A program made the translations under genes and the position numbers. The notes beneath the pieces were generated by a model. It saw only the letters and a list, made by a program, of their open reading frames with translations. It made no database searches and was not told the origin of the DNA. Source: Hyphochytrium catenoides (taxonomy: Eukaryota; Protista; Hyphochytriomycota). From it: DNA of 33,872 bases. This document shows, piece after piece, positions 6,932-33,634 of this stretch. The stretch covers positions 1-33,872 of the forward strand of contig FLMG01002176.1 of assembly GCA_900088475.1 (NCBI GenBank). The letters are read 5' to 3'. Position 1 is the first letter of the stretch. The number at the start of each line of letters is the position of its first letter.

Positions 6932-9493
6932 ATGCCGCAGTTCAGGAGCAGAAATGCAGGCGGCGATGATGCGGACTCGCCCTATTATCTTATGTCGAGC
7001 AGGAACCGCGGCCGCGGTGGCGGCGGCGGTGGTGAGATGGATGCCGACGGAGGTCGCAGCGGCGATGGGAATATGGCGCAGCTATACAACCCTCCTTTGA
7101 GAGAGAATGGAATGCCAAAACCGGAAGTTGTGCCAGTGAGGCCCGTGAAAGCGACTCCCTATGTAGAGAAGGCTAGACGATCAGAGAACTACAACTATGA
7201 TCAGAAGCCTTCGATCTTCAATAACTCCTTTGTGGGCAAGCCTTCCTTCATGATGATGAAGCAATCCTATGGGGCAGGCCAGCTATCTCCTTTCAACCCT
7301 GGGCCTGATGCTCTAGGCGGTCTCCGGAGGAGTGTCATGGGACGGCGAAGCATGATGCCTCAGGGAATGAGAATGTCCGTCGCCCAAGGTGGTGCTGTCC
7401 CTTCAGACGTAACGGAGGCGTTCAATCGCTTTGACGAGGATGGAGACGGCGCGCTGAACTTCGATGAGTTTGCGAACTTCGTGAAGTTTTGGGTCTTTGA
7501 TCGCAACAAACTTCAGTGCAAGGGCTCACAGTTTGAGGCCGTAGTGGAGGTGCTCTTCCAGATGGCGGGAGGTAACCAGTATGGCGCCGTAGGACCTTCT
7601 CAAGTCAACTACATCCTGAACACTGAGATCAAGGACAAGGAGGAGAAGTTCCAAGAGCCCAAGGTTGATGAGGCAGACGCGAACTTTGCGAAGTTGCCTA
7701 AATATCAGCGTGTTGCCTACTATCTCTTCTCAGGCATCGCGTTGTTTCTGACACTCTTTACAGGTATCTTCTTCGTTCTGATGACATTCTCGAGCTGGCC
7801 AAAGAAGGCCCTTAGCCGCATCCGCTCTGTTTTGAAAATCCATGGCATTCGGCTTCTTTGGCTGGCTGCGTACATCGGCGCTTGCGTCTATCTCTTTACC
7901 ACCAACTATCTCAAGTTCATGTCCATCACGGCTGTCACCAGGATTACAGGCGCTGGCATTGGACTCGCTACGGGCAACGCACAGCTGATTCGATTCAACA
8001 TCTTTTTCATCTTCCTTCCCCTCTGCTACCGCAGTCTGGTATATCTACGAGGAATGCGCTGGCTAATGCACTGGGTGCCGCTGGATGACACGCTTCTCTT
8101 TCATAAGATCGTTGGAACTGTCATTATCACCGCCTCCATTGTGCACACGATCGGGCATGAGATCAATGCTATCACCATTGCCAATACTACTCCTGCACTA
8201 CTGGCTGCCACCCCATTGGGTCCACACTTTGCCGCTCCACCGCCGGCTTTCGCCTATAACTTTCTCACACTTCCTGGCGTGACGGGTTGGATCATGCTTC
8301 TGGTGGTCCTCATTGCCATGCCCTGGGCCTATATTCCTGCCTTGAAAAGGCGGTTCTTCAACGTATTCTATCACACCCACAAGCTCATGCTCTGGGTCTT
8401 CACCCCAATGCTTATCGTACACGGTTTCACGGCTTGGCTGGTACCTCCTAAAGTCTGGTACATTGTGATGGGCCCACTTATTCTCTACTTCATTGATCGC
8501 CGGTACAGGATGGCCAAGCAGATATTCAACCAGCAACTGAACATCCTAGATGTTCGTGTCTATCCTGAGACGACTGTGCTTTACATTGAAAAAACTGCAA
8601 AGTATGAGAAGAAGTTTCGCCCTGGACATTATCTATGGATCTGCATCCCAGATATCTCTAACCTCGAGTGGCATCCTTTTACCATCACCTCTGCTTGTGA
8701 CGATCCTTATGTGTCAGTGCACATCCAGCGCTCTGGTGACTGGACTCGACGGCTACACAACCTGATGTCGGACATACAGGCACAGGCCGCCGGTGCACCT
8801 CCAGGAAGGCAAAGCATAGCGCGTCCTGGAATGAACATGGGGAACATTGTCTACCCTAAGTGCTACCTTGACGCGCCGATTGGCGCTCCAGCCCAACTGT
8901 TCAACACCTATGAGGTTACGGTGATGGTTGGGGCTGGTGTCGGTGTCACACCATGCGCGTCGATCGTTAGAGAGATGATGTATGCAGTCAATCGCAAGGC
9001 CTGCGCTGCAGACTGCATTCTTAGGCGCAAGCGACCTCACGTCTGCTGCTGCATGATTCAAAAGCTGTACTTTGTATGGAGCACGAATAAGCAGCACAAT
9101 CTGGACTGGTTTGAGGACACTGTGAACACACTCAGCGAGCAGACCGACAGGGTAGAGTTCCATCACTACTTTACGACCATCAAGAACACCAAGGATCCTC
9201 AGGTGAAGCCTCTCCTGGCAGTCCAGCAGCTGCTTCACAGGCAGACGGGTCTTGATGTCGTATCGGGCCTAAGAACCAGGAACCTGACTCACTTTGGGCG
9301 GCCAAACTGGAATGAGTTTTTTGGCAAACTGGCAGCTAGGCACGAAGGCAAAGAAGTTGGAGTGTTCTACTGCGGACCAACAGTGATGAGGGACGCCATT
9401 GCTCAAACCTTGAAGCGGATCAACCTTGCCGACAACGAGAATCCAATGTCTAAGGATAGGACTGTTTTCCATTTCCACGCAGAGCAGTTTTAA
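6932..9493 (+). CDS. EF-hand NADPH oxidase (NOX5/RBOH-like respiratory burst oxidase), 853 aa, single coding exon
   Basis: Uninterrupted ORF. EF-hand DEDGDGALNFDE; heme-ligand His pairs in FHKIVG..IVHTIGH and FYHTHKL..IVHG; FAD motifs WHPFTITSA and HIQRSGDWT; NADPH motifs GAGVGVTP, GRPNW and VFYCGP; C-terminal FHAEQF. Confidence 0.96.
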   Translation: MPQFRSRNAGGDDADSPYYLMSSRNRGRGGGGGGEMDADGGRSGDGNMAQLYNPPLRENGMPKPEVVPVRPVKATPYVEKARRSENYNYDQKPSIFNNSFVGKPSFMMMKQSYGAGQLSPFNPGPDALGGLRRSVMGRRSMMPQGMRMSVAQGGAVPSDVTEAFNRFDEDGDGALNFDEFANFVKFWVFDRNKLQCKGSQFEAVVEVLFQMAGGNQYGAVGPSQVNYILNTEIKDKEEKFQEPKVDEADANFAKLPKYQRVAYYLFSGIALFLTLFTGIFFVLMTFSSWPKKALSRIRSVLKIHGIRLLWLAAYIGACVYLFTTNYLKFMSITAVTRITGAGIGLATGNAQLIRFNIFFIFLPLCYRSLVYLRGMRWLMHWVPLDDTLLFHKIVGTVIITASIVHTIGHEINAITIANTTPALLAATPLGPHFAAPPPAFAYNFLTLPGVTGWIMLLVVLIAMPWAYIPALKRRFFNVFYHTHKLMLWVFTPMLIVHGFTAWLVPPKVWYIVMGPLILYFIDRRYRMAKQIFNQQLNILDVRVYPETTVLYIEKTAKYEKKFRPGHYLWICIPDISNLEWHPFTITSACDDPYVSVHIQRSGDWTRRLHNLMSDIQAQAAGAPPGRQSIARPGMNMGNIVYPKCYLDAPIGAPAQLFNTYEVTVMVGAGVGVTPCASIVREMMYAVNRKACAADCILRRKRPHVCCCMIQKLYFVWSTNKQHNLDWFEDTVNTLSEQTDRVEFHHYFTTIKNTKDPQVKPLLAVQQLLHRQTGLDVVSGLRTRNLTHFGRPNWNEFFGKLAARHEGKEVGVFYCGPTVMRDAIAQTLKRINLADNENPMSKDRTVFHFHAEQF

Positions 9494-9841: not shown

Positions 9842-11289
9842 TCACAAGCGTATTCTGCCTATCGTTTCCTGGCCTTTTCCAGGTTGAACCGCAATCTCCA
9901 AAATCTTGGCAGCCACCGCGTCTGGTGGATAGAGCTCTCCTGCCTTGTGCATCTCGATGAAGCGGTTGTACGCGGAGAAGTGGGAGCTAGAGTTCTGTCT
10001 GATGGCCTCTGTAGTGGCATCATAGAAAGAAGAGTTAGATCCCTCGGGCGGATTGTAACAAATTGGGGAACGTTGCAAAGTATAGTGTTGAAAATGGTGT
10101 GTCAGAGATAAGAGCATCATCATTGGACTTACCTTGCATCTCTGTATCTACGACTCCTGGGGCTATCGAATACACTCTTGTCCTCGTATCACCGGCTTGC
10201 TTGATTTCTGCTTCCAGCACCTGAGGAAGCATTCGTTTAGCACCGCATATACTGCTTTGGGATATAGCACAGACGGCGTGACGTAAGGAGCTTACAAGGT
10301 CTATAATAGAAAATAAGCAACACAAAGTAATTCGATGGGCGTCAGGAGATTGAGACGAGAGGAAAGGGCATTGAAAGCTGACGCTTCCCTAATTTTTTTA
10401 CCCTGATCATCATCTCAGTGGACGCCTTTGTCGAGCAATACAGTCCCCATGTATCATATGGAGAAGTGGCGGCACCTGAAGAGATGTTGATAATTACTCT
10501 CTCCACAGCTGCCATTTGATTGGCGGCCTTTAGCTTGGCCGAGCTTCCTCCATACAGATTGAGGAAGTTATTGACCAGGATTTGAGGGGAAAGAGCGTTG
10601 ACCAAAATATTGTTCTTGAGCTCCTCATTAGCTAGGTCTCCGTACGGTTCCATGGGATCGAGGACGCCGGCGTTAAGAATGAGAACAACCCGCTTCGTAT
10701 CATGAGGCAACTCCTTCTATAGAAAAGAAAGCAAGCGTCACAATAGTCTCTTCCAACAATCCTCCCGCCCATAATATCCGACAGGTGTGACTGAGCGTAA
10801 GGTGGTAAGGAAAAGAGAGAGCACTCTCTTGTAGGTAGCAGTGCAATCTTTCAGAATGACTAAGGTACTGACCTCAAAGGGAAAGCGCTCCACATCTGCA
10901 ATGTTAGCTAGATCTACTTTATGATCGATATAGGTGGAAGATCGTTCCTCAGGGAGACCGCGCCTAATGCGTAAAGACATTAGTCTATGAGACAGTATCC
11001 GCGATGCGAATGTCGTTGCTATGTATCGGTACCTGGAGATACCATGAACCTTAAGCGCACCACTCTGCACTGCGAGATGCGTCAAGTGCTTTCCTATCCC
11101 ACGCGAGGCGCCAGTAATGAAAAAGACAGAGTCTGCGCAGGAGGCAAGGCGCGCAGAAGCCATGATGTCGCTTCTAGTCCTTCCTCGTGGGACTAGTGCC
11201 GATACAACGCAAATGCTGTGTAGGGCCAGCGTTGAGCAAACAACAACAAGGAGGAGGTGAAATGACGAGGGTGGTGATGAGAGAAGCAT
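9842..11289 (-). CDS. Short-chain dehydrogenase/reductase, sepiapterin/benzil reductase (YueD)-like, 5 exons
   Basis: Exons 11289 (or 11163)-11033, 10963-10873, 10716-10402, 10220-10133 and 10008-9842 join in frame. Motifs TGASRGIG, LNAG, NISSGAA, YCSTK (YxxxK) and APGVVDTEMQ. Confidence 0.92.
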
Positions 11290-13241: not shown

Positions 13242-16200
13242 TCAGTTAGCCATGCCTCTGACTCTCCCTGTCTCTTCTTCCTGCTGCGCTGCAAATTGGT
13301 TGAACACTTGCTCGAGGGAGACCTGGCTCACAGAGTATTCAGGCATATCAACCGTCTGCTTCATGCGCTGTAAAGGATATTGGAGGCCATGTTAGACTTC
13401 TGTCGAGACGACGTTGCAAGTTCAGAAAGGTTCGAATAAAGCAGCTTACTATCAAGATCCAAAAACTACATCTAGCAAGGAGTGAAGGTCATGCCAGAAA
13501 AGGTCGGCGAAGTAGCAGGAGCTGAAGCATATACGGCACGTTACGCGGTGTCAGAGATGTAGCGAAGAGCACTGGCAAGAGCGGTGACAGTGCTACACTT
13601 GGAGTGGAAATGAACAGAAAATGCCATACTGACCTCTAGAGCCTCAAAAATCTCTGAAAGTCTCTGTTCTCCTTTGTCTACTCTCCATCTGCTCTTCAAA
13701 TCATGGCGTTCAAGAAGTTTTACCCCCGTAAAGTTCCGCTCCAGGAGGTTCCTTAGTGTCTCGAAGTGCTCCTGAAGCAGCCACCAGTTTGCGAATAGAG
13801 AACAGGAGACTTTGCCATCCTTATTGAGTGCAGTCTCAATCTGCCAGCCCTCTTCATGCAGTCGCTTCTCTCTTTCAGTGTTGTCAAGAGAGGCACATAC
13901 AGCCGATATGTCGTCCTTCTTTAGATCTTCTTTACCGATTTTCTTCATCAACCCCTCTAGCTCCTCCTTGGGTGGATCTCTGCCCTTAATCTCAAGCATT
14001 AGACCTTGGCCGAACCGATCCTTCAAGTGTTGGATGCTTCCAAGACAGCGGAGACGCCCACCGACCATAATGCCCACAGAGTTGCAAAGCGCCTCACATC
14101 TAGGTGAGAGAGAGAGAAAACATTGGATGCTATGGTCAGACTACATCAGAGACCAGACTTTGGAAATCAGGCCTTGGAAGAGGTAAAGAAAGTAACCGTG
14201 ACATCGCAGAGAGACATTCAAAGCTGGTTACAGTACACTTACTCCTCCATTGAGTGTGTCGTGAGGATGACTGTGCTCTCCCGATCAACCGTGGACACTC
14301 TAGCGATAACGCTCCACATAAACCTTCTAGCGACAGGATCCATGCCTGTCGAGGGCTCATCCAAGAAGAGAACAGGGGGTGAGCCGATGAGAGCGATGCC
14401 CACCGAGAGCTTTCTCTTGTTGCCTCCTGAGAGAGTGTGCGCGAGCTTATGCTCAAAGTCTACAAGGTCCATGGCCTGCATCGTCTCCGCCACGACCATG
14501 GGGATCTGGCCTGAAGGAACGCCTCTGATCGCTGCGAAGAGCTCTAGGTGCTCTCGGACGCTGAGAAGGTCGAGCAGCGCATCAAACTGTGGGCAATACC
14601 CTACAAGGCGGCGCACCAGTATTTGCTCTGAGACAATGGAGCGGCCATCAATGAAGCCGCGACCTTGAGAGGGAATCTCATCGCCAGTCATGATCTTCAT
14701 GGTAGTAGACTATACAGAGAGCGAGAAGGAAGGTCAATACAGGCTTTTTATTCAGACAGGCCATGCGGGAAGATCAGCCAGTAAAGGAAGTTCATAAACC
14801 ACCTTCAAGTAGGAGCAGACGCTAGACTTCTGAAGACAGAAAGAAGGAAGAAGAGATCAAGAGAGATAGACGACAGAGGGCTGACGGCAAGAAGGCGTAT
14901 CGAAGTAAGCTCAGCAAGAGGCTGAGTATATCAGCTTAACGTAGACCTCTTGTGCCGCAATAGGAATAGGCAGCCTGACAGTTAAGGGCGAAGGATTAAC
15001 CTTAGCATACCTTGCCCGCCCCATTGATTCCTAAGAACCCGAAGCACGCGCCTGCAGGCAGACCGAACCAGAGATCCTTCACAGCAACCTTGCCTGTCCT
15101 ATACACCTTTCTTATGCCCTCGACACGGAGGAGATCTCCCGCCGCTTTCCCGTCCTGAATCCGCTTCTTCTCTTTCAAGACGTCCTCATCCTCCTCGAAG
15201 GGCTTGTCTTGTACCACTGGATCCCGAAGGAAGGGGATCCATGCGCGAGCTGACTCTTGGCATAAGATATAGTCGATAAGAATAGTGAGAAGGAGGTACA
15301 CCCAAGGCGTGACAGCCATATAAGTAATCCCAGCACCGGCCAGCTCCCAGTCGAAGGCGCTCCTGGTATTCCCAGCGTTGGAAAGGGCAGATCTTAGGTT
15401 CCCAACCACCATGTTGATGAGACCCTAAAGAGGATGTAGTCAGTGCGTGAAGAAAGAAGCTTTTGAGGGTGTTGGAGAAAAGGCAGAACTGAACGAGACG
15501 CAAGGGGAGATACCGGGATCATTTGCGGCGTGGGAAAGGGAGAGAGGTTAAGGACTATGAGATGGTCCTCATTCAGCGAGGGAATCAATCTATGGAGGAA
15601 GGAGTAAGATGAGGCTATTCTAACGCCCATCCCGCCGGTCTATGTTGGGTTTATCTCTTTCTGTTCTCTACAGGTGTAGTCCTCTTAACTCACCTCGCCC
15701 AACGCATATGTCGGTAGTAGCCTTAGGAAGTGTTTGAGCGAGGCACTGATGTCCTTCACACTGGCTATGTTGTCCATGACCGAAGTCGCGATAATGCCTC
15801 CGAGGCCCGTGATGAACGCAATAAAGAGCGCCACGTATTGCGCTACCGTATGCGTCGAGAAGAGGAAAGAGAATAGGAAAGTGATGGGCACTATGGAGAG
15901 CCCAAAGGTAAAAAAAAGCAGAGCAGTGGCGCCGAAAGGGTCGGACGCGCACTGGGAATTGCAAGTGCAGAATGGATGGAGAAAAAATGGGGAGTGAAGG
16001 TTAGAACGGGCGTGGGGATGAGCTTAGAATAAGAGATTAGGTGTAAAAGAGAAGGAAGACCGCTAAGCGTTGAAGGACAAAAGGTGCTGAGAAGCAGAGT
16101 CGGCTGTACAGCCAAAGATGGAGAAGGGCTGGGCAGTCGTTGCATCTCGCCCCAGGGGGAGGCAGGAGAAATAGGAGACCAAAGCAATTCACACTTCATC

Positions 16201-19200
16201 ATTACCTGTCCTGTGCAGTTGATCCCTGTGAACGCACTTATCTTGAACGCTTGGAGGAGAACCAAAGCGGCAATGAAGGTTACGAGGTAAACAGTGAAGT
16301 CCCATAAGAAGTTGGCAATCCAGTAAGCGGACAGAGAAGCGCCGCTGACCATCTGCAGATGCTTGGAGTTATGCGTGTTCTCCTTCTCCTTCACAACCAG
16401 CGTGATAATGTTGGCAGGGATGAAAGAAATCGCGATAAGAATGAAGGTAGAAGCAGTGAAGGCTAAGACCGTGGTAAAGACAGCCGATGTTTGCTGGGTA
16501 AGCGGGAGAGGATGTGAAGAGACAGAGATAGATGCATCTTTATCCCCTGTGGTCCAGCTGTATAAAGCGCTATGCAGAAGGTTATGGAAGAGGGGCGCTC
16601 CAAGCAGTGCTGAAGAGTTGACTCCAATAGTGGCTGAGATAGAATTGTTTGCCTCATCTAGGTGGAACACATAGGTACCGTACTGGGACAGAGAAAGAGA
16701 CGATGCGGCCTCAAAAGAGGCGTTCGACGCCTGCAAGGCCATTGCCTGATCCCCTGAAAGGGCAGAAAGATTGTAGGAAAGATCGAAGTACGAGACAGCC
16801 TGCGAGTTTGGAGGTGGAGTGAGAGTGAGCGCTTTAAAAGACACTCCTGCGCTGGATGGGAAGCTGTCACGAAGTGGGGAGCACATGCCGTTGTCTTTGT
16901 CCTCTCTGCCATGGCATATGTACGACATACGCAGCTCCACTTGCTCCGCTGGTCGACTTCTACCACGCATTGCGAAGAGAGAGGAGTCCAGCACTACCCT
17001 TGGTCCTGGCTTTCCTCTATTTGAGGAGATCAGGATGAGAAAGCCGAGTAGAAGCATAAGAAGAGGCATCAGAGTGCTGCAGCAGAGACTCTGGCTGTCT
17101 CTCTTAGCATAGCGAAGTCTTTTGAGAAAGAGAGCGCGAAGATGAGTGAGGAAAAGAGAGCGGGTGCCGACGTCTTTGACACGGAATGTGGACTTCTTCA
17201 TGGGTTCCATAGAAGGGAATGACGAGGTAGGAGACGATCCTGAAGCCGGTACTTTGTCTGGTTTCTGTGTGTTTTCATGAGTTTTCTCTGACACCTTAAT
17301 GAAGACTTCCTCCATCGTCGTCTGCAGGTGATTCGTCGGTCAGAAACAGATCTCAACAATATCTGTAAGTTGGCACACCGTAAGACTAGAGCGCTAACAG
17401 GTAGCAGACCGGGGAACAAGCGAAGGAGGAGGAATAGGTGAAGGAGGACAGAGGGCCTTACCACACTGATGCCATAAGATAGCAGGCCTAGCTCTGCCGA
17501 TCTATTGTCAAACTCCTTAAACATGGCTGGGAAGTTGCTGTTGGCATCCAAAGGAAGCTGGAAAGCGACCTCAGAACCAACCTCGCTGAGCTTCCTGGCG
17601 CTAGGAATGTGTTGACTGATAAGCGTCTGAAGAGCTGACGCGGCGCTCGCGGTTGCTTCCCTTCCCCCTGCTTCTCTCTTCACTACGGTGAGGTTATAGC
17701 CCACACCAAAGCGATGCTTGAGAAAGAGCGAGGATCCGCAACACTTGAGCTCTCCTCCAGACATAATAGCAATCCGGTCACCTAGAAGATCGGCCTCATC
17801 CTATGAATGGAGGAGCCGAAGTGTCAGAATGCCTAACTATCAGACTAGCGTAAAGATAAAAAGAAGCAAAAACTGCCATAACATTTCGCTGGACAAGCTA
17901 GAGGAAGATGCAAAGGAGAGTCAGCGGCAGATCGGAGTAGAGAAGGCTCGCTAGGTCTACCATGAAATGGGTGGTTAATATAATGACTCTGCCCTCGCGG
18001 TTGTTCTTAATCACATCCCAGGTGCTGCGTCGTGAATAAGGATCCATGCCGCTGGAGTGCGAAAGAGAAGAAAGAGAGGCAGAAAGGCAGCCGGTGTCAG
18101 GAGAAGAGGGAGTTCAGAAATAAGAAACAGTATTAGAAGCTGGAACTACGGAGCTGTCGTAGAGGTTGACAGAAGCCAAATGATCCGACTCCTCTCTCGT
18201 GGGAACGGACATGAGATCCTTTAGGCAGACATCGAGGCGAACGCCCGTACAAAAGGCATGGCGAAAGAAGCAGAGGGCTCACCTGGTCGGTTCATCGAGA
18301 AAGACGAGCTTGCTATCGCCAATGAGCGCAATGGCGAGAGACAGCTTTCTTTTCATTCCTCCTGACAGCTGCGAGGACTTCACCGTTCGCTTCTCAGTCA
18401 AACCTACCTCCGCAATCTAAGGTTGAGAAGAGAGAGAGGAGGCTTATGGTTAGCAGGAGGGAGCCAACAGGATGATAAGGCGAAGAAAGGCGGACTTCTA
18501 TGCAGGACCTGCAAGTCTTGGAGACATTTGCCGGCTTACAGGTCAAGTTAGAGGCATTTGTTGGCTTACCTTCTTCGTGCACTCGTCCATTAGCTCTTGG
18601 CCTTTGAGTCCTTTAATACTGCCGAAGAGTCTCAAATGCTCGATGACCGTGAGATCTTCATAAAGCACATCGTGCTGGGGGCAAACGCCCATGGACTTCC
18701 GGATAGTCAGAAGATTCTCAGAGAGAGAGAGGCCACGGAAGTATGCATCGCCCTTTGTGGGGTCCAAGAGACCGCAAAGGATGGAGATTGTAGTTGTCTT
18801 TCCTGAGAAAGGATGCCCGTAAACAGTGCGAAGGCAAGGCATGATAGTAAGCAGAGACCACAGAGCAGAAGACAAGAACGTAAGAAAAAGAAGAGCCGCG
18901 ACATGACTTGTATGATTTGTGCTTTCTACGAAGAAGAGAGAGCAAGCCGCGACAAGTGCATGAAGGAAGCCAAGAGTAAGTCTCACCTGCGCCATTGTGC
19001 CCCAGAAGACAGGTGATCTGGTTCTCATATAGGTTGAGATCTAAGTTCTTCAGCGCTACCTTAGGCCCCACTGGTGTCTTGAAGACTTTCTGCAGTCCCA
19101 CCACTCGCAGTGCTCTCCCGTCAAGCTCCTGTGCCTCCAACTCCTTAGAGACAGGCTCGAAGTCCTTCCCGGCTTGTTTTGATTCTTTGGGAGCCACAGA

Positions 19201-22200
19201 AGGCTTCTTACGCTGCGTCTTGAGGCCCCAGTACCGTGGAGAGAAGCAGAAGCACCACCCTTGACGGACACCCCACTCCTTTGGAAGTGTCTGCCCGAAG
19301 AAGAAGAACAAAACGTTAGAGCTGTTACCAGGCAAAGGTAGACAGCCCTCTCTCGCCTGCTTCTAGCTCGATCTCTTCCCACAAAATCTCTCAACCCCAC
19401 CCTGTGCATGGCTTTGATTCCTTCTTCTCTCGTTCCTCTCAGCCTTTCATGTAGGGTGCACGGGACGTTACCTGGTCAAAGTATGCTCCCAAAAGCGTAT
19501 AAAAGACAAAGTCAAAGACCATCAGACCAATAACGGCGCCAAAGGAGAAGTTGTTCACCACTGCAGAAGCCGTTAGAGGCGTCTCAGTGGTGGCGAAGGC
19601 GGAGAGCACGGAGATGCCCTGGGCTAACGCCACAGGAGGAAGAATAGAGGTGAGAGCCTTGGATCCGGGGCTGCTCGTGGGATCAGAAGAGGCGTTGTAG
19701 ACCATGTACGAAAGGAAGAAGAGAACCACTCCTGCAGAGGAGAAGAGACGATCGTAAGGAGATAACCACTAACTGCTCTTAAGGAGATTGAAAGTTTGGC
19801 GTTCAAAATGAAGTAGTTGCTGCTTTCAGAGGCAGTGACTATGATGTGAAGACAGGACGAGGAACATGGATATACCACAAACAGAGTAAGAGAATGCTTA
19901 TGTCTGATTGTGTGTGCGAGAGAGAGAGACAGAAGAGAGACAGAGAGTAAGAGAGACGAAGGTAGGGAAGCAAAAGGAAGCAAGGAACCGATAACTATGG
20001 AAGCAGCCTCACGAAGCCAACGCCAGTGCTAGGAGTAATGCTCAACGCACCTACAACGGCCCCGGTTTTGGCCTTGGAGAACATTGTGCTCAGAAAGAAG
20101 CAAAATGCAATGACATCCAAACCGAAGAAGAAGTAAAGGCAAAAGAGGCCGCCAAAGCTTGCTGATGGGAAGACATTCACCAGCGAGACGCCTGCCATCA
20201 TCAGAGAGGAGATGAGGAACAGGACAGCGTAGGTGATGTACCAGCTGACAATGATCCCGGAGTCACTGACACCCATAATCTTTGTCAGCTCTCGGAACTT
20301 GAGCTCCTTTTCACGGATGAAGGCCACAAGAATCCTGGAGACGCTATACAGATAGGCCAGGACAAAGGCAAGGGGAAAGACAGTCGCAGCCAGTGTATAG
20401 AACTGAGAGCTGCGGTAGCTCGCCGTCGGAAAGTTATAGAAGCTGTTGGACGCCGGTAACTGCTGATAAGGAAGAGAAAACGCCTCAATCGCCGCGTTAT
20501 CAATGAGGGAAAAGGGATCAACGTTTGTCCCTAGCCTTTTCAGCAGGAGGAACAAGGGCTTGAGGTAGGAGCGCATGATAGGATCCGTCAGGAGCTTATC
20601 GGTAACGAATGCACGTTTATCTTGGATGGTGGTTGTCTAAGGATACAGAGCGCAGAGGCAAACAAACAAAACTTACTTTTTGATATGGAGACGAAGCTCA
20701 ATAGGGCGACGAGAAGGTAAAGGACACAAGGCAGCGAAAGGTAAGCGACAGGATTCATGAGTCAGAAAGTGGACACTCAGCTTTAAATGCAAGGGAAGTA
20801 GGCTAACGAGTAGTCTTTCTATCACTTACCGCCTTAGCATTAGAACATGTCACTTTCCTCGCCTGAAGATCCTCAGTCTTAGGGTTACAGAGGATAAACT
20901 TGTTCACCATCGTCTGCAGGGTGACATGCCCGCCGGCCACCGCTTGCAACATCGGGTAGGAGTTCACTCCCTTCGTCACCTTGTCCACCGCAGCCTTCAA
21001 AGTATCGAAAGCTCCTCCAAAGATCGGAGAGGTAGGTAGCTCCCTGCTGAATCTTGTAGAGTTTAGGCGAACGCCGTACTCCCACTTCCCCACCTTCCCA
21101 ACCGTAGGGGCCGAGTAAAACTCTATCGCGGCAAAGATGCGAGGGCTCTCTGGGCCGCTTCCATAGCTCGGGCTAGCAATATACTCATCTAGGCTCTGGG
21201 TGGAGGGGAAGTGTATGAAGAACTGTTTGACTCCACTGACCGTGAAGTTTAAGGCGGGGATGGCAATGTTAGGGTGCCAGAGGCTGACTGTCTGGTTGAA
21301 ATAATCGAAGAAGTCTTTGTTGGAAGCCACCACGGCAATGAGACTGGGTGGCAGCGGACAGCCAGTCGGAGGTGGATTGATCTATCATAGGCATAGCGAT
21401 CAATGTGTTAGACTCTGCAATGGAGTAAGCGTGACGGACTTCGGTTTTAAGAAGAGGATGCCAAGAGACGGAGTAAAGGTAAGAAGAGGAAGCCGAAGAA
21501 AGGGAGAGACTTTATAGGTGAGAAAAGGAGAGAGAGAGAGAGAGAGGGAAAGAGAGAAAGAGTACAGCACAGGAGTGGGAGGAGAGTTAACCGCCGCACC
21601 TCCCCAGTAAGAAAGCCTGCACAAAGTTTCTTATGCTCTTCAGAGACGTTGAATAGTGGGACGCGAGAGAGAGCGAAAAGGAACCCCGACATGGATGGTT
21701 CTCTCTCATAGTACTTTCCCACATCATAAAAGGTATCAGGCAAGAAGGCAGGGAAGACTCCCCGTACATTGTAAGGTGCTGTCAGGGAAGAGAGTGGAAA
21801 GAAGGAAGACGCGGTCAGCGAGAGACAGAGAGGGGAGGGAGCGAGACAGAGAGAGGGGAAAGAGAAAGAAAAAGAGAGGGAGAAAGGAGAGAGAGAAAAG
21901 AGAGAGAGAGAGAAGAGTTGCGGAGGGAGGGTGCACAACAAAAGCAAGAGAAGGAGATCGGCGGTTGATGGGCTAGAGTTCAGTACTCGGCCCAGATAGA
22001 GCTTCCGCAACAGATATTGCGCAGCAAACTTGACGATCAGAGCTAAAAGCTGCTTTGTGGTTCTTAGACGAAGGCTCCTACCGTCCAAGGAATATCTAGA
22101 ACCCTGAGTACAGTCATCAGCAGGGATTTCTGGTGGACAACTGGGCGTGTCTGAGGACCATCCAGCTGGCACGTCGACTGTGGCGAGCTCAGACTAGCAA

Positions 22201-24130: not shown

Positions 24131-26964
24131 TTAGGTCCATTCCCCTTGAACTGGGTCCGCTATCCATGTTTCAGGCCTTATGAGGATGGGCTCCAGCTCC
24201 GCTACCCTTTCAAAATAACGCGAGAGGTAGTCGTATTCTTCCGCTAGGGCCTGTTTCTCATTCGATAAGAAGGATGGCATCATGAAGACGCTTCTGTTGG
24301 CCTTCTCTCTCCTTCTATCTGGCACCTTAAGAGATCCTGATGGTCCAATCTTGGTCACTGTCCCGTGCATCTTCTCTAGGCTCCAGGAGGCCCTTCTCTG
24401 CCGCTGTGGTAGCGGCGGGGCCCATTCTTTCTCGTTCCTTAGCCCTTTCTGTGCCTGGCCGTCCTCGACAGGCTCCTGTCCTTTCCTTCTGAATCCGAAG
24501 CGGAATCCACTTTGCAAGTCTTCACTTCTGGACTTCGGCTCTCGGTCACTCTGTTCATCTTCCTCGTCTATTGATTCTCCTTCTTCAAGGTCTTCCTTAG
24601 CAACATCGCGAGAGGTTCTACTAGTCCTTGGTCTCGTTCTTAACGTCTTCTCTCGGGCACTTAGGTCACGGTTCTCGGTCATTCTGTTGTCGTTAGCAGC
24701 CCTCGCCCCTGTCCTCTGCGGTTCTGACTCTCTTACATCTGCTGCTATACGGTCCGGCGCTTTGTGATTGTCTGTCTGTTCAGTTTCCTCAACCACCATC
24801 TCCTGCAACAGGCAACTTTCATCCTGAGTCTCATCGCTTACGGCCTGGGTCTGAGGTGCCTGAGACTGCATTGTCAGGCCATACGTAGGCGATGGTGGTG
24901 CCTGGCTCTCCTCTTTCCCTGTCCAGTAGGACTGCGAGTCATCTTCTCTCTGGTGATCTGTATTTTCCTCTCTTCTCCGCTTCCTAGTACCTTGAGAAAG
25001 GCTGGGCTCCTCTTGTTGGCTATCAGTTTCATTCTCGCTACTTTGCTCATACTTTAGGTCTAGGGGCGGGTGACCCTCCGCCTCGTCTTCTCCCTCATAT
25101 CTCTCTTCGCCTTCCTTTGCCTCTTCTTCTCGTTCGTCAGACTGGTGACTGCTTGTCTGACTGGTGTCCTGACTGTCCGGGGGAAGCTGGGATTTGAATG
25201 GGGAGAGGTGGTTGACTATCCAGCCCAGACCGCCAACTATTTTCCCGATAGCCGAAGTCTGCTGCTCTTCGCTCTCTGTACGAACTCTCTTCTCTCCTGC
25301 TAACAATGAGGAAGTCAGCACAATGATAGAGGTTCTTTCTATACTTCACCATCAATGACTCTCTCCTCTCACAGTCCTTACTTCCCGCTAGTCATTCCTT
25401 GCTTAACCCCGTCAAAGATACGTCTCTACGGCCCATTTTTTTTTTACTCTCCTTCTCTCTCTTTCTCACTGGACTTACGTGATCGGGCGTCGGTATCCTG
25501 AACTCCCTCAGACCTTGCGCCCGGAGATTGCGGCCCTGCCCCTCTTCCTGTCTCATCCATGGCCTTCACCCCCTTCTCAGGGCTTTCAGCATTCTGATCT
25601 GACGGCTCCTTTGCCCATCTCACTTTACCGGCAGAGGGCAGATTCACAACTTGGTCTGTTCCTTCCTTAGCTCTCTCTTCGTCGTTCCCGTCATTCGCCT
25701 CGCTCTCGTCCTCGTCTTCTTCAACCAAGCGCGCCTCAAATTGCGTGAAGGTCTGGGTAGCCTCAAACTCATACTCTTCTTGGCTATTATCCATCGCTGT
25801 ATCCCCCACCTCAACCTCTCTCTCCCGTTCTGGCTCCTCTCTCCGATCTCCTTCTACGGACAATGGCTCCGAAGCAGTGGCGGATGGAGCTGAATGTCGC
25901 TGCGGCCTTGGTTCCGGCCTTCCTTCCTTTCCTGCATCCTCCAGTGTGAGTGGGTTCTGTTTGTTGAATTGGAAAGCATGCTCCACTGTTTCCTCTCCGC
26001 CTTCGCATGTCACTTTCTGCCTGCTGAAGAGGTTTGCCTCTATCACTGCCAGAGGAAGTCTAGCTAGGACTTGTCTGACGTCGGGATCTCTATCTATCTC
26101 TACTGGGTTGCCAGATACGATCCAGTTCTGCATCAGATAAAAGTGCTTTAACTCGGACACCTGCAGAGGCCATGCGACGGACATGAGAGTGTGAGGACAG
26201 AATGAGATCAGAAAGAGCCATAGACTGCCCAAGACACAGTATATGCCATGGCAAAAGACGTGGAGAGCGTAGCTACAGGTGCATGTGAGAGGAAAGCCGC
26301 TGTGCCTGTAGACCGACGTCTATCTTAAGAGAGGACTATCGATCACTTCCTAAGGTGCTCCGCTTAACTCTTTTCGCTCCTATGCCTCCCACATAATTGC
26401 AACTTAGCTCTCTCCAGTGCTTCGTCTCAACCCAGGAGACGGCCCAATGTCTTATAGAGAGCATAGCAAACTTACGGAGAGACAGAGGCGACTCGACGTA
26501 TCCAGGTCCCCACAGCGGGCGGGTGTAGAGATATGGAACTTTCTGAGGAACACAACGCCATCTTTCAGGGCTGCCAATTTCTCTCCAGGCTGGAGGCAGG
26601 AAGCTCTACACGTAGGTTTAAGGTAGGCGAAGATGAAGTGGAACGTGTCTGTTAGGAGAATGCGAGATCTCTTCTCGTCAACCTCCACCACCTTGGCTGA
26701 GACCCCAGCAGAGCGAGACTGAGGGCACAGGTCCTGCCATTTGCGCTATGGAACAAGCGTTAGCAAGGGAGTAGAGAAGGATTAAGCACCGCGATCAAGG
26801 AGGACGAAACGCTACATGAAATAGAGTCGAACGGCAGAGTTCAGAGAATGGAAGAGTGGGGGCATTTTGTAAGCAAGACCACCTACCTCTTCCTCAGGTG
26901 TGAAGCTCCCTATGCACATCATCACCTTGGGCTTCAGCCATGCTTGCCTCAGGGTGGAACTCAT
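24131..26964 (-). CDS. TPP1/Est3/TEBP-beta-like OB-fold protein with long acidic S/TQ-rich tail (~732 aa, 4 exons)
   Basis: Exons 26964-26887, 26745-26476, 26160-25479 and 25299-24131 join in frame. The N-terminal ~150 aa carry LRQAWLK, AKVVEV, ILLTDTFHFIFAYL, LKDGVVFLRKFHI, LCLSVSEL and GNPVEIDRDPDVRQVL, matching by eye the motif order of the TPP1/TEBP-beta OB fold. Confidence 0.7.
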
Positions 26965-27404
26965 TGGACAGGTAAGAGAAAGGAACCAGCAGGCCCTGCA
27001 CACGTCCGATATCTTATCGACCTTCTGACGGTCCTTGCTATCCTAGCTTGCTGTCTCGTGACACTATAGCCTACTGGGCAAGGTATGGCGCCCTACCTTT
27101 CACATCCCCCCAAGGCCTGTTCCCTCTGTGCTTCTAGCACCGAGCACCGAACCCTTGTCTTCTGCTTCCTCGCCCTTTCCATGGCCCAACCGTCATCAGA
27201 GGTGGAGGCCGGCGGCGATGGCGGGAGCGAGGGAAAGCTGGACTGTGAAGAACAAACCTTCTATTCAGAATAAGGCACAATTTAACTTACATCAGGCCTA
27301 TACAATCCCCCTACACGCTCAAAAGAGAGTATAGACTGAGTATTATGCTCACTAGAACTACACCGCCCACCCAACCGTGTGGATTAGGAACATACTCAAC
27401 TCGG

Positions 27405-27415
27405 TTCCCGCCAAA
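27405..27415. promoter_or_regulatory. Canonical E2F binding site in the bidirectional spacer
   Basis: TTCCCGCCAAA (reverse complement TTTGGCGGGAA) lies between the divergent ATGs at 26964 and 27660. A second E2F-like site, TGGCGGGA, is at 27219-27226. Confidence 0.55.
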
Positions 27416-27659
27416 TTATGAACTGAAAGGAGAGACGCGGCCGTGGCAGCAGCAGGCGGCGGCGGCGGATGTTGAGGCTTCCAAGAGCTGCAGAAGAGCT
27501 ACTGAGCATCTCTCCCGACAGCTGCAGACTGATTCTAGAGCTAGAGATTTTGATTGGAGTCCGAGTGACCGGGGACGAGTGCTCTTTCTCCGTCGATTGC
27601 TCTGACGGGAGGCCTTGGAGAGGTGGAAGTCTTAGGGCAGCGTGCTCGCCAGCGTAAAG

Positions 27660-29586
27660 ATGACTTCGATTGTCTCTGCCGAGGATATCGTTGAGGCGTT
27701 CCAGGAAGTCACAAGTAAAGCAGTCGATGAAGGCGTTGCGACGCTAGGTAATGGTGATCGTTTGCTGGGTTAACCTTCGTCTTCCTTTTCTCGACCTTCT
27801 GTCCCTTTCTCCTGATGCGTACCCTACAAGGGCTCGTCTCCTCTTTCGCTTCCAAGCGGTACCAGCCGTTGACTTAACGAGCATTGTCTGTCCTCCAGGT
27901 GCAGAGATATGTATTGAGCTTGGCATCTCAGCTGGAAAGCTGGCATTAGAGTGGGACGCCTACGCAATGAACTCTGGCAACCCTGCGGGCCTTGCCCGGG
28001 AGCCTGATCTCAAGTCCTTAAACGTACTGAAAAAGCGGATACAGCAGAGCCAGTCTGGAAGTAAACCCACTCGCTCTATAAGGAACCCTGTCATACAAAG
28101 GCCGACACCTCGAAAGACTCCTGGTGCTATAACGGTTAGCACATACGCCCCTTACCTGTCTCCTCCTCTAGATGCTTTCGCCACCTCCCTCACTTTCCCT
28201 TAGCCTTAGATCTGCCTGCAACCTCCTCCTTTGCCTACATGTGCTAACGTTTGCATCTGGCCCTTTCCTATTCCGGCCGTATTCTTGACCTGATCGCTTG
28301 GTATCACGATAGCAGGCTTCCCCAGGACTCTCCGGAGTGAAGAGGGAGTCCATCTTCTACAGCCCTAGCATGGAGACGCCCACGAAGTATCAGAAGAGAG
28401 AGCCCATGTTCTCACCAAGGTTCTCCCCTTGCTCTCCCTCCCAGCTTATCTATTCTCCTTTTCACAGCGTATCTCCACCACCGTAAGCACTTCTACTCGG
28501 GCTCTCCGAATGTCTTTTTTACCTCTCAACAGCTAAGTCTCGTGAGTACCCTGGTCACGGCCGAGTCTCATGCTCTGCCTGCTTTCTCTCTCTGTCTTCC
28601 CTCTTGCAGCACTCTTCCATCTCCTCCAGCTCCAGGGATGTACAGCCAGCGTAAGAATGCCGGTCAAGTGGTTGAGTCAATGAACCTGGAGAAGAAAAGA
28701 ATGCGCAACCCTTCCTCCTCCCGACTCAAGGTCCAGGTTACCGCGTCCCCGTTCAACGTACCTGCAGACTATCGATATATGTATACGCCCATTCTAGAGA
28801 AAGGAAGAGTGCTCGAGAGAATATTGCAGGAGGGGACGGAGGTACTGCTGGACCGCTACAAAGTAGGTGAAGAGTCATCAGAGGGCGGAGAAATCCTTCC
28901 TCCGCTCTCCCGCCTAGGAGAGGTCTCTCAGGAGCCCATCATGGTGGCAGGAAGAATATGTTGCGACGCTGCTGAAGGCAAGTTAAACCGTAATTCTGTG
29001 GTGCTCGAGGGCAGCCGAAGAGAGAGCGGGAGCCTTCGAGTCCCTCTCGATCTCTCCGCTGTCGAGACTTTCTCCTTGTTCCCGGGTCAGATAGTCCTTG
29101 TTCAAGGAGTCAACAGTGATGGAAGGAAGATCTCAGTGCAGAAGATATTAACGGCAAGATTGGTGTTGCTCTTTCAAGGATTGCTCATTGTTTGCTTGCC
29201 TTGTGACGCTTGTTGTTGCCATTGTCTTGAACCTATCTCTTGACCCGCTTGGCCATCGTTCTCCACTGCTCTACTTTCCTATCCTTCACCTTTTCTCTAA
29301 GTTCGGGGAGTGAGTCTATAGTCTAGCTAACTCCTACGTGGTTGCTCTCTGGTCCAGGATTATGCAGCACCACCATTGAACACACCACCTACCGACGTAC
29401 AGTCCTTCTACCACTTGCCAGAGAAGGGAGGACAAGGGGGCGGAGACGGGTTTCTCTCCATCTTCGCGGCCTCTGGCCCCTTCTGCACTTCAGATAACCT
29501 TGACTACCAGCCTATGAACGACCTTCTAAGAGCAGTGACGGGCGAGAATCCAGACCTCCTCGTCTTGGTAGCTCACACTCTCCTTT

Positions 29587-29623
<37 letters not shown>

Positions 29624-31566
29624 GTGACTCTTACGTAACTGTGCTCACTTCACTGCTTTCGTTCCTTACCTCTCTCCATCTATTAGCATGGACGTAGTGC
29701 TTATTTTATGATCCCCGCCAGCCCGTGGCCATTTTCCAGCTTCCCAACTTCTTCGTCTCTGTTTATCAGCTGTAATTTTCACAATGTCCTCCCCTGAGCG
29801 GCTGCTGCTCCTTCTCTTTCTCTCAACCTCCCTCTCTGTCCCTGTCTGTCTGTCTCTCTTTACTTTGCAGGCGGGGCCTTTTGTAGATATAAAGCACCCA
29901 AAAGTCGCCGAGGGAGAGGTAGTCCACACGTCCTCATCAGGAGAGAAGGAGTGCTTATCCTATCAGCAACTTTTCCATGACTTAGGTATTGCCAAAACCT
30001 TTTTGTTATATGGTGCCTTGTGATATAGGCCCCTCATTCCTCTGCGAGAGCACCCTCATATCTCTGGCTTCGCTCTCTTTGGGGCACGTTGATAGCGCTC
30101 TATGTATTCTCTCTCACATCCTGGGTCTAAGACACCTCTTTCGCCAGTAACGCACATCGTGTCGAAGCTGGAGGAGAGCTCCTCTTGCACAACCCGCGTT
30201 GTGCTGGTTCCATCTGCCCGGGATGCCCAACACGACTTTGTATATCCGCAGCCTCCCTTCGCTATTGACCCTGCCCTCCTGAAGAGCGAAGTAAGTCTAG
30301 TGTTAGAACACTCAGGGGTAGAGAGAGAGCCAGACGCAGGTTGGAGAGATGCGGAGGCCTGAGCGGGGACTGAGGACAAGCAAAGGGAAAAGTGAAGGAA
30401 AGGCACTGTCCGTGATAACCACTTTTGAGACTTTATATCACCCTAACAACGCTCGTGCGGCATAATCTCCGTTCTCCCCCACCATTAGCGCATCATTCCC
30501 GTTTCCAACCCAGCCACCGTGAAAATCAATGAAGTCTCTTTCGCGGTTTCCACGCAAGATATTCTTTTTCACCTCGGAGCACAAGAAGTTGAAAGGTGAA
30601 GGATTGTACATCGCTTCTGTCCATGCCGTGGCATGCTCTCATTACTGTCAACCTATGGCGGTGGAGTTAAAGACACTAAAGGCTCCGTGTAGGGGCAAAC
30701 ACGCAGCAAAAGGTCGACTGATGAGGCTCGCAGAGCACCTGCTCCAACAGCGAAGGTACGGTTCTTTGCTAGCCCTATGAGGCATTCTGCCGTCTCCACC
30801 CTCTCTTCCCCTGTCGCTTACTGGTTCCATAGCTTTAGCTTGGCTCTGCGAGCAGTGCTTGCTTGTTTTGTCGCCCTTCCATCATGTCATGCTAACCTAT
30901 CTTCTCTCTGCCCTGTCTATCTGCTGCTATGTTGAACATCCTGCTTTCGGAGCAGCTTCTATCCTCTCTTTCCTCCGTCGCTCGATGACTGCAATCTTGA
31001 CCTGCGATACTATGATAATCTGCGCTTCCGGAAGACCCCGGACATTCTTATGTTGACATCCCGGCTAAATCACTTCGTTGGGGTAAGAGACCAGTCGAAA
31101 GAAGCTAGTTTCGTTGCCCATATTTCATGCGCTTTGTCCCTGGTTCATTTCACTGATGAGTACGAGGATTAATCGATCACTTTTGTTGCCACGCGTTCTC
31201 TTTCTGCTCACCTAACACCACCTTCAATGCTAGTTCTTTACCTCGTATCTGACCTATGTTCCCTCTTCCGCCGTTGTTAGCCTATAGGGCAGACCCTATG
31301 TTTGAATCCAGGTCAGCTGGCCAAAGGAGCCAATGGAGGAACCTTTGCTCGGCTAACAATCTGTCCGCCGCAGTTGGAGGCAGATGCCGCAGGTAAGAGA
31401 GGTTATTAGGAAGTGGGACGAGAAAGCAGCCGATATCCTATTTCTCTGAGGAAATGCTGAGCAAGACGTTGCCCTTCATTCTTTTTCTCTTCCTTCCGTT
31501 TTCCGACCAGACACCGTGCACCATAACCTGGCGGATCGGACGTGCGTCGAGATCTTACGCATCTAG
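27660..31566 (+). CDS. POLA2: DNA polymerase alpha/primase regulatory subunit B, ~12 exons
   Basis: Motifs YRYMY, VAGRICCDA..KLN..SVVLEGSR, FSLFPGQIV..G.N, AASGPF, GPFVD, VLVPS.RDA.HDFVYPQPP, SNP, RLAEHLLQQRSFYPLFP, PDILMLTSRL and CLNPGQLAKG..GGTF. Stop TAG at 31564-31566. Confidence 0.95.
29592..29620. repeat. (CT)n microsatellite in a POLA2 intron
   Basis: Directly visible CT run. Confidence 0.9.
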
Positions 31567-32062: not shown

Positions 32063-33276
32063 CTAGGCATTGTTCTGCATCCAGTGCTGGTACCATAGCA
32101 CTACTCTTTCCAAGTTACTCTCTGCGTCCTCCGGGGTGTCGTTCTTTAGCGGGATAACAATTTCTGGTGCGTAGCTCTCTTTGGCTTCTTCCAGCACCAC
32201 CTGCATGATCTCGCACTCTACATTCTCCTGCAGCTTCTTCGGTGCATAACCTCTGAGAGTAGGACGCAGGCGATGAGCGCGCCATCGAAGAGAGTAAAGC
32301 CATCGAAGAGAGTAGAGCCAAGAAGAGGCAGGGTCAGAAAGCTCGAAGCTTGGCAATTGGAAACGAGGCGGAACAGGGGACGCAAGAGCGAGAAACTGAA
32401 GAGTAAGCAAGCCAGTGAGCAAGGGCGACGAGTAAGCGAAGAGAAGAACAAAAAGAAAGGGAAGAGAGAGGAAGAGAGAGAGACAGAGCGCAAGAGTTAT
32501 CATTGCAGAGGAAGACGCGACCCATTCAGCGTTTCTCTTTACCTCTTTTCTAGTCTATCATAGAGGACTGTGTTATTGGTCTGCAGCACGAGGACAAGGT
32601 CGAACCACCGCTCAGGGAAGAAATCGCAAGAGTGAAGATCCACAATCGCGCCGCCCTCTGACATGATATCCTCTAGATAATCTACCACCTGAGTGACAGG
32701 AGAGAAGACAGATTCATAGCGTTATCCAGAGTCAGGAAGAGGAAAGTACGTAGGGAAGAGCAGGGAAGATGCAACAAAGTGAGAGGAGGAAGATGGAAAG
32801 CGGAAGAGAGCGAGTAAGTGGTCCTTCGCAGAGAAAAGGAGAGTTTGAAGAGAGGAGGAGAGGAAAGAAGAAGAGAGAACCTCCCCGCAGAGAGGGGACT
32901 AGGCGATGGAAGAGATGTCTTTTGTATGGGAGGAGGAGAGAGAGAGAGAGTTCTAAGAGTTAGAAGAGGAAGACTGTGCCCAGAAGTGATGAACAGCGAG
33001 GACGATGGGAAGTGTACCTTATCTTCGTTAAGAAGATAGCTGTCAAACTGCTCGTCCCGTCCATCGTGGAGCTCGTGCTCCTTTACCTTCAAGGGGACGA
33101 AGAGTGAGCTTGATATTCAGGTTGCACCATCAGCTCAGAGAGATAGAGGAGACCAGATCCAAAGGAGCAAGGAGGGCTATCAACGGGCAAAAGAGGGAGA
33201 GTGTCACGCTTCATAGGAGTATACCAGTGTGCCCACGTTTAGATGCTTCAGCCCCAGTCGCTCCTATAAAAAGAAG

Positions 33277-33309
<33 letters not shown>

Positions 33310-33634
33310 GATAATAACAGAGAGAAAGACAGACACAGAGTGAGCGTGAGAGAGAGAGAGAGAGAGAGATGAGAGAGAGAAGAGAGCACTCGGTGAGAAT
33401 GGACAGATCAGGCCACTCCTTGGCACAGCAAGTGACAGGCAGAGCCGATGCCACGGATTGGAGTGGAGGGAAGTAGATAAAGAGTACGAGCAGCCAGTAG
33501 ACAAAGCAAGGACACCATGAGCAACAGAAAAGACTAGCGTTATCTGAATTGCTTACCGCCACCATGCTGGAGAAGGTAGTCTTGCCTGTGCCAGGCGTCC
33601 CTGTGATCAGCACATTCGGCTTGGATCTCTTCAT
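32063..33634 (-). CDS. AK6: Adenylate kinase isoenzyme 6 / Fap7 (ribosome biogenesis ATPase), 5 exons
   Basis: [62 protein letters not shown]; exons join through GT-AG introns. Confidence 0.96.
32281..32327. repeat. 18-bp tandem repeat (2 near-identical copies plus a partial copy) in an AK6 intron
   Basis: GCCATCGAAGAGAGTAAA / GCCATCGAAGAGAGTAGA / GCCAAGAAGAG. Confidence 0.85.
33274..33387. repeat. (GA)n/(GACA)n compound microsatellite in AK6 intron 1
   Basis: Directly visible GA and GACA runs. Confidence 0.9.

Follow-up and report, generated by a model that had tools for sequence, protein, structure and literature searches.

POLA2 and a divergent orphan gene with a putative OB fold flank a spacer with E2F-type sites in the protist Hyphochytrium catenoides

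In mammals, E2F sites bring about the induction of POLA2, POLA1, POLE2 and the bidirectional POLE3 unit at the G1/S transition (PMC5295014), and the POLA2 (p68/p70) promoter is given as E2F-dependent at G1/S in the passage of that article that cites Nishikawa et al. 2000. E2F-driven bidirectional promoters have been documented for CDT2-INTS7 (PMC2194621) and for CCHCR1 (in the pair CCHCR1-TCF19; PMC10734992). Bidirectional promoters bearing E2F sites have also been documented for head-to-head genes in general (PMC4089025), as has the co-regulation of head-to-head genes by such sites (PMC8104967). Neither the control of POLA2 by E2F nor the occurrence of E2F sites in bidirectional promoters is new. 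Here we describe a locus in Hyphochytrium catenoides (contig FLMG01002176.1, 33,872 nucleotides, the whole of which was analysed and is called the window) in which POLA2, encoding DNA polymerase alpha subunit B, lies head to head with a gene whose product has a putative OB fold. We refer to this partner as the OB gene and to its product as the orphan. The window is intron-rich eukaryotic DNA of ~51% GC, with ~8 genes in 34 kb. The locus is, we think, probably a divergent G1/S promoter of the ordinary sort, next to an orphan OB protein that may be of interest.

The two genes are divergent, lie less than 1 kb apart and have the consensus E2F site TTTGGCGGGAA between them. Reading of the sequence placed the - strand ATG at 26964 (CAT at 26962-26964) and the + strand ATG at 27660. 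The spacer, defined here from ATG to ATG and not between transcription start sites, is 695 bp long, in agreement with a preliminary description of this DNA, which had the two ATGs diverging across about 700 bp. The locus is like CDT2-INTS7, the POLE3 unit, CCHCR1-TCF19 and FOXM1-RHNO1 in its head-to-head arrangement within 1 kb, its canonical E2F site and the presence of one replication gene as a partner. It differs from these four in the identity of the gene pair, in belonging to a protist, in being proposed from motifs, and in having two mirror-oriented sites at about -255 from each ATG. Compared with the mammalian POLA2 promoter, the gene is orthologous to one that is E2F-dependent, whereas its neighbour and promoter sequence are unrelated and its regulation is read from the motif.

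The + strand gene is certainly POLA2 by its sequence, as the preliminary description had proposed. In a Pfam search, the open reading frame (ORF) at 28542-29243 matched DPOA2_OB (PF22062) with an E value of 1.7e-28 and a score of 99.2 bits, the gathering cut-off being 27, and other exons gave sub-threshold matches in the correct order, to Pol_alpha_B_N (PF08418, 17.3 bits) and to DNA_pol_E_B (PF04042, 19.4 and 25.7 bits). A word search returned 63 homologues, all of them environmental and the best at 44% identity; PF22062 was present in all 63 and PF04042 in most. The gene has ~10 exons on a three-frame map, and the coordinates of these and of all other features are collected in Table 1.

The E2F site that the preliminary description had placed in the spacer is indeed there, and it is canonical and unique in the window. 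The pattern TTSSCGCSAAA had a single match in the window, TTCCCGCCAAA, where 0.05 were expected, and at least one match was found in 5 of 100 shuffles; on the - strand this match reads as TTTGGCGGGAA, a textbook E2F site. Nearer to the OB gene lies a second, weaker E2F-like site, TGGCGGGA, which consists of the core only and whose reverse complement is contained in the first site at 27406-27413. Where 0.73 copies of this 8-mer would be expected in the window there are three, two of them within the spacer and on opposite strands. Simulating the spacer 20,000 times with a first-order Markov model yielded at least two copies of the 8-mer with a frequency of 2.5e-4, a figure that is generous because the 8-mer was picked after the fact. 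On the sense strand of each gene, TCCCGCCA starts 254 nt upstream of the POLA2 ATG and 262 nt upstream of the OB gene ATG, so that the two sites form a mirror arrangement. A transposon origin of the two sites was considered, and a larger inverted repeat around them was looked for; none was found. Other features of the spacer are a CCAAT box upstream of POLA2, a direct repeat whose copies lie 34 nt apart between the E2F site and the POLA2 ATG, and a GGC-rich tract that resembles the one surrounding the second E2F-like site.

Conservation of the gene pair was assessed at the loci of the nearest POLA2 relatives, which were found on seven contigs, all at 44% identity or less; the collections searched held no close relative. 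The pair was absent at all seven, where the gene upstream of POLA2 was another one or nothing recognisable (Table 1), and tblastn of each OB gene exon against the seven loci gave no match. The synteny check asked for in the preliminary description therefore came out negative, and the POLA2-orphan pair does not appear to be conserved at this distance, although seven loci amount to a weak refutation because the distance is very large. Three of these environmental contigs (L005, L006 and L008) carry a PP2C phosphatase gene divergently upstream of POLA2, which suggests that a PP2C-POLA2 head-to-head pair is conserved in their lineage. In L002, TTTGGCGGGA is found at 7892-7901, 109 nt upstream of the POLA2 ATG, which fits widespread E2F input to POLA2. 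A word resembling a cell-cycle genes homology region, TTTGAA, is located at 7946-7951 of the same contig, ~45 nt after TTTGGCGGGA.

Three observations weigh against reading the spacer as an E2F-type G1/S promoter region: the second site is without a T/A flank and lies within the GGC-rich tract GCCGGCGGCGATGGCGG; looser E2F-like 8-mers (TTTSSCGS) are at chance level across the window; and of the seven distant POLA2 loci, L002 alone showed a clear upstream E2F site. The two genes might be chance neighbours, with the E2F site serving POLA2 only, the second site an accident of the GGC-rich tract and the expression of the orphan unrelated. Chance makes about one quarter of adjacent gene pairs divergent, and the genome is gene-dense, with the ~8 genes of this window lying in 34 kb. 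The core-only nature of the second site within GCCGGCGGCGATGGCGG and the change of POLA2 neighbour at the distant loci point the same way. However, chance would have to account for two exact copies of the 8-mer in 695 bp, and for their near-equal distances from the two ATGs in identical sense orientation relative to the genes, and we consider this explanation rather unlikely.

We return to the reading of the spacer as a G1/S divergent promoter, and to the gene on its other side. The four proposed exons of the OB gene join in frame into 723 codons with a single terminal stop and GT-AG introns. With a codon-usage score trained on the other coding stretches of the window, the proposed frame had the top score in all four exons (for exon 1, +0.17 in frame against -1.32 and -0.02 in the other frames), while both introns and the spacer were negative in every frame. 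By this pattern the OB gene is real; its exon borders are predicted ones. Introns 1 and 2 have lengths that are multiples of three, and each contains an in-frame stop, so that retention of either would truncate the protein.

The first ~200 residues of the predicted product are globular in composition. Between residues ~200 and ~600 the product is strongly acidic, with much Ser, Pro, Thr, Gln and Gly, and the part encoded by exon 4 is an acidic, Ser- and Gln-rich region, probably disordered, with one C-terminal helix. When the last 130 residues were modelled with AlphaFold, one helix (~residues 679-702 of the 723-aa model) was obtained with a predicted local distance difference test (pLDDT) score of ~90, the remainder being near 50. 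The layout that we propose, with weak support, is one of ~723 residues in which residues 1 to ~165, encoded by three exons, would form an OB-like domain of the TPP1/TEBP-beta/RPA70N kind, followed by a ~470-aa acidic linker, which is probably disordered, and the C-terminal helix.

The preliminary description had called the - strand gene TPP1/Est3-like. In line with this, the two nearest clusters to exon 2 in an Atlas language-model search were annotated TEBP_beta/TPP1 (PF07404/PF10341), with scores of 0.94 and 0.93 and with 207 and 196 shared features, respectively. The features of exon 2 are thereby nearest to clusters of the families of TPP1/ACD, Tpz1, Est3 and TEBP-beta, and we treat this match as a lead, not as proof. 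In TPP1, a variable, disordered linker connects the N-terminal OB with a C-terminal helix (PMC8653790), and the coarse layout of metazoan TPP1 resembles that of the orphan (PMC8653790); this likeness is weak evidence because many adaptor proteins have such a layout. Every sequence search, on the other hand, came back blank. Pfam scans of each OB gene exon singly gave no match at E up to 1 or up to 10, although a weak member of PF10341 or PF07404 could escape a scan of single exons since the domain spans three of them. When exons 1, 2 and 3 and the C-terminal 70 aa were compared with every PDB chain by phmmer (E up to 10), only chance rows came up, and none of them was a TPP1, Est3, Tpz1, TEBP-beta or p50 chain. 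A full phmmer scan of exon 2 against 1.84 billion protein representatives gave 0 matches, and word searches were blank for the exon 4 ORF and, with E values allowed up to 10, for exon 2. No significant sequence match therefore connects the orphan to the TPP1/ACD, Tpz1, Est3 and TEBP-beta families or to their solved members, and the POT1-binding domain, the TEL patch and the partner-binding motif of TPP1 were not identified in it. The TPP1/Est3 label is a tentative one, drawn from the exon 2 lead and the coarse layout, and found no backing in the sequence searches.

Two further candidates were set aside. A metagenome locus (L001) picked up in the exon 2 scan shared the octapeptide seed PARCGDLD with the query and no wider similarity, and was taken as a chance match. 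A supposed likeness of the C-terminus to the TIN2-binding end of human TPP1 was dropped, as the PDB search did not reproduce it. An AlphaFold model of exon 2 alone, made with no alignment, had a pLDDT of 38.9 with three short strands and was unusable.

The same Atlas search also brought up a second family group, the N-terminal OB of RPA70 (PF04057, Rep-A_N), which accounted for 13 of the 30 exon 2 matches (best 0.91) compared with 7 of 30 for TEBP_beta/TPP1. The product of the - strand gene might accordingly be a protein-binding OB adaptor, of the RPA70N type or another, such as a checkpoint or replication factor; it would have no telomere role, and its gene would be co-regulated with POLA2 in S phase as one more replication-linked gene. 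The Rep-A_N set is the largest one, adaptors in general tend to combine an N-terminal OB with a disordered, acidic tail, and an E2F-like site precedes the OB gene ATG by ~260 nt. Nevertheless, the two top-scoring clusters are TEBP_beta/TPP1 and not Rep-A_N, no exon has a Rep-A_N match in Pfam, no DNA-binding OB domains follow in the orphan, and neither word searching nor the full phmmer scan found a homologue of any kind. We regard such an adaptor as a doubtful candidate. When residues 1-80 of exon 3 were searched in the Atlas, no named family was returned, just unnamed and PB1-like clusters. Overall, the chances that the orphan has an OB of the TPP1/TEBP-beta type seem roughly even, and those of true TPP1/TEBP-beta orthology are lower than that.

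The preliminary description had gone further and proposed that the shared E2F promoter forms a telomere module. On this proposal, the - strand gene would be truly orthologous to TPP1/TEBP-beta/Est3, and selection would have paired it with POLA2 in a module coupling the recruitment of telomerase to C-strand fill-in. The two best exon 2 clusters carry the fitting families, the succession of OB, long disordered linker and C-terminal helix matches the TPP1 layout (PMC8653790), and POT1-TPP1 and CST-Pol alpha/primase have been functionally linked in the literature (10.1101/2023.05.08.539880, PMC10499019). Set against these points are the Pfam scans, in which E values up to 10 were allowed and still no exon matched PF10341 or PF07404; the PDB search, with no match to a TPP1, Est3, Tpz1 or TEBP chain, and the full phmmer scan, with 0 matches; the 13 of 30 Atlas matches that belong to Rep-A_N and the missing support from exon 3; and the different neighbour of POLA2 at all seven distant loci, with blank exon tblastn there. 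POLA2, moreover, is a general replication gene that acts at every Okazaki fragment and serves all lagging-strand synthesis, and for this reason an E2F site in its promoter needs no telomere rationale. We judge the proposal improbable. What holds of it is POLA2, the head-to-head layout and the E2F site, while the TPP1 identity and the telomere module are unproven, and nothing shows that the pairing is dedicated to telomere maintenance. A single literature search listed no paper combining TPP1, POLA2 and 'bidirectional promoter'.

Under the reading that we prefer, an ordinary divergent promoter, an E2F/DP-type G1/S promoter region would turn on POLA2 for S phase, with the strong site serving POLA2. 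Judging from the motifs, the partner gene may be co-induced, be it through the weak site on its side or through the strong one, which it would share with POLA2.

The remaining genes of the window were identified from ORF translations, in part by eye. They include a single-exon ORF of 853 aa that resembles an EF-hand NADPH oxidase/ferric reductase (NOX5/RBOH-like; translation by eye); two ORFs like a short-chain dehydrogenase/reductase (TGASRGIG motif), which are probably one spliced gene; a large, many-exon ABC transporter gene of the ABCA type, seen in ORF translations; and a spliced gene resembling adenylate kinase isoenzyme 6 (AK6/Fap7) with the P-loop GTPGTGKTT, recognised by eye. Several introns of the ABCA-type gene carry CT-dinucleotide runs, which translate as SLSLSL.

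Table 1. Positions of features in the window and of the genes upstream of POLA2 on the seven distant contigs
Feature	Position	Strand	Remarks
POLA2 (DNA polymerase alpha subunit B), ~10 exons	27660-31409	+	three-frame map, Pfam
POLA2 exon 1	27660-27747	+	
POLA2 OB-domain exon	inside 28341-29240	+	
POLA2 stop codon	31407-31409	+	
ATG-to-ATG spacer	26965-27659	no strand	695 bp, 54.5% GC
Canonical E2F-type site TTCCCGCCAAA	27405-27415	+	245 nt upstream of POLA2 ATG
Weaker, core-only E2F-like site TGGCGGGA	27219-27226	+	~255-262 nt upstream of OB gene ATG
CCAAT box (ATTGG on +)	27553-27557	-	~103 nt upstream of POLA2 ATG; single pentamer, no statistics
Direct repeat, first copy CTTCCAAGAGCTGCAGA	27478-27494		
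Direct repeat, second copy CTCCCGACAGCTGCAGA	27512-27528		
GGC-rich tract	27452-27468		
OB gene exon 1	26887-26964	-	26 codons; ATG at 26964; donor GTAGGT
OB gene intron 1	26719-26886	-	168 nt
OB gene exon 2	26476-26718	-	81 codons; acceptor CAG, donor GTAAGT; core of putative OB fold
OB gene intron 2	26161-26475	-	315 nt
OB gene exon 3	25479-26160	-	227 codons + 1 nt; acceptor CAG, donor GTAAGT; OB-like end, then acidic low-complexity
OB gene exon 4	24131-25299	-	acceptor TAG; stop TAA at 24131-24133; stop-free ORF of 396 aa
NOX5/RBOH-like ORF	6932-9493	+	
Short-chain dehydrogenase/reductase-like ORFs	10342-11289	-	
ABCA-type ABC transporter gene	~13500-22200	-	
AK6/Fap7-like gene	32063-33634	-	
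Upstream neighbour of POLA2 in L005	512-934		PP2C phosphatase
Upstream neighbour of POLA2 in L006	1422-2237		PP2C phosphatase
Upstream neighbour of POLA2 in L008	3618-4229		PP2C phosphatase
Upstream neighbour of POLA2 in L003			ABCF-type ATPase
Upstream neighbour of POLA2 in L002	6647-7509	-	Cys-rich repeat protein (GGxxRCKxxGC...SRGLCxxHGG, many repeats)
Upstream of POLA2 in L007 and L009			nothing recognisable

What is solid in these findings, a POLA2 gene whose divergent promoter contains an E2F site, is expected biology, and the orphan OB protein is a more interesting object than the promoter. It is quite unlikely, in our estimate, that the orphan is a TPP1/TEBP-beta orthologue that has diverged strongly in a deep-branching protist, where telomerase-pathway genes would stand head to head with replication genes under E2F. 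If this were true, gene order itself would tie telomere extension and fill-in to the G1/S programme. A partner of the TPP1 type would extend the range of a fast-evolving telomere factor to a lineage with none described, and the pair would be a naturally occurring case of common cell-cycle control over telomere and replication genes.

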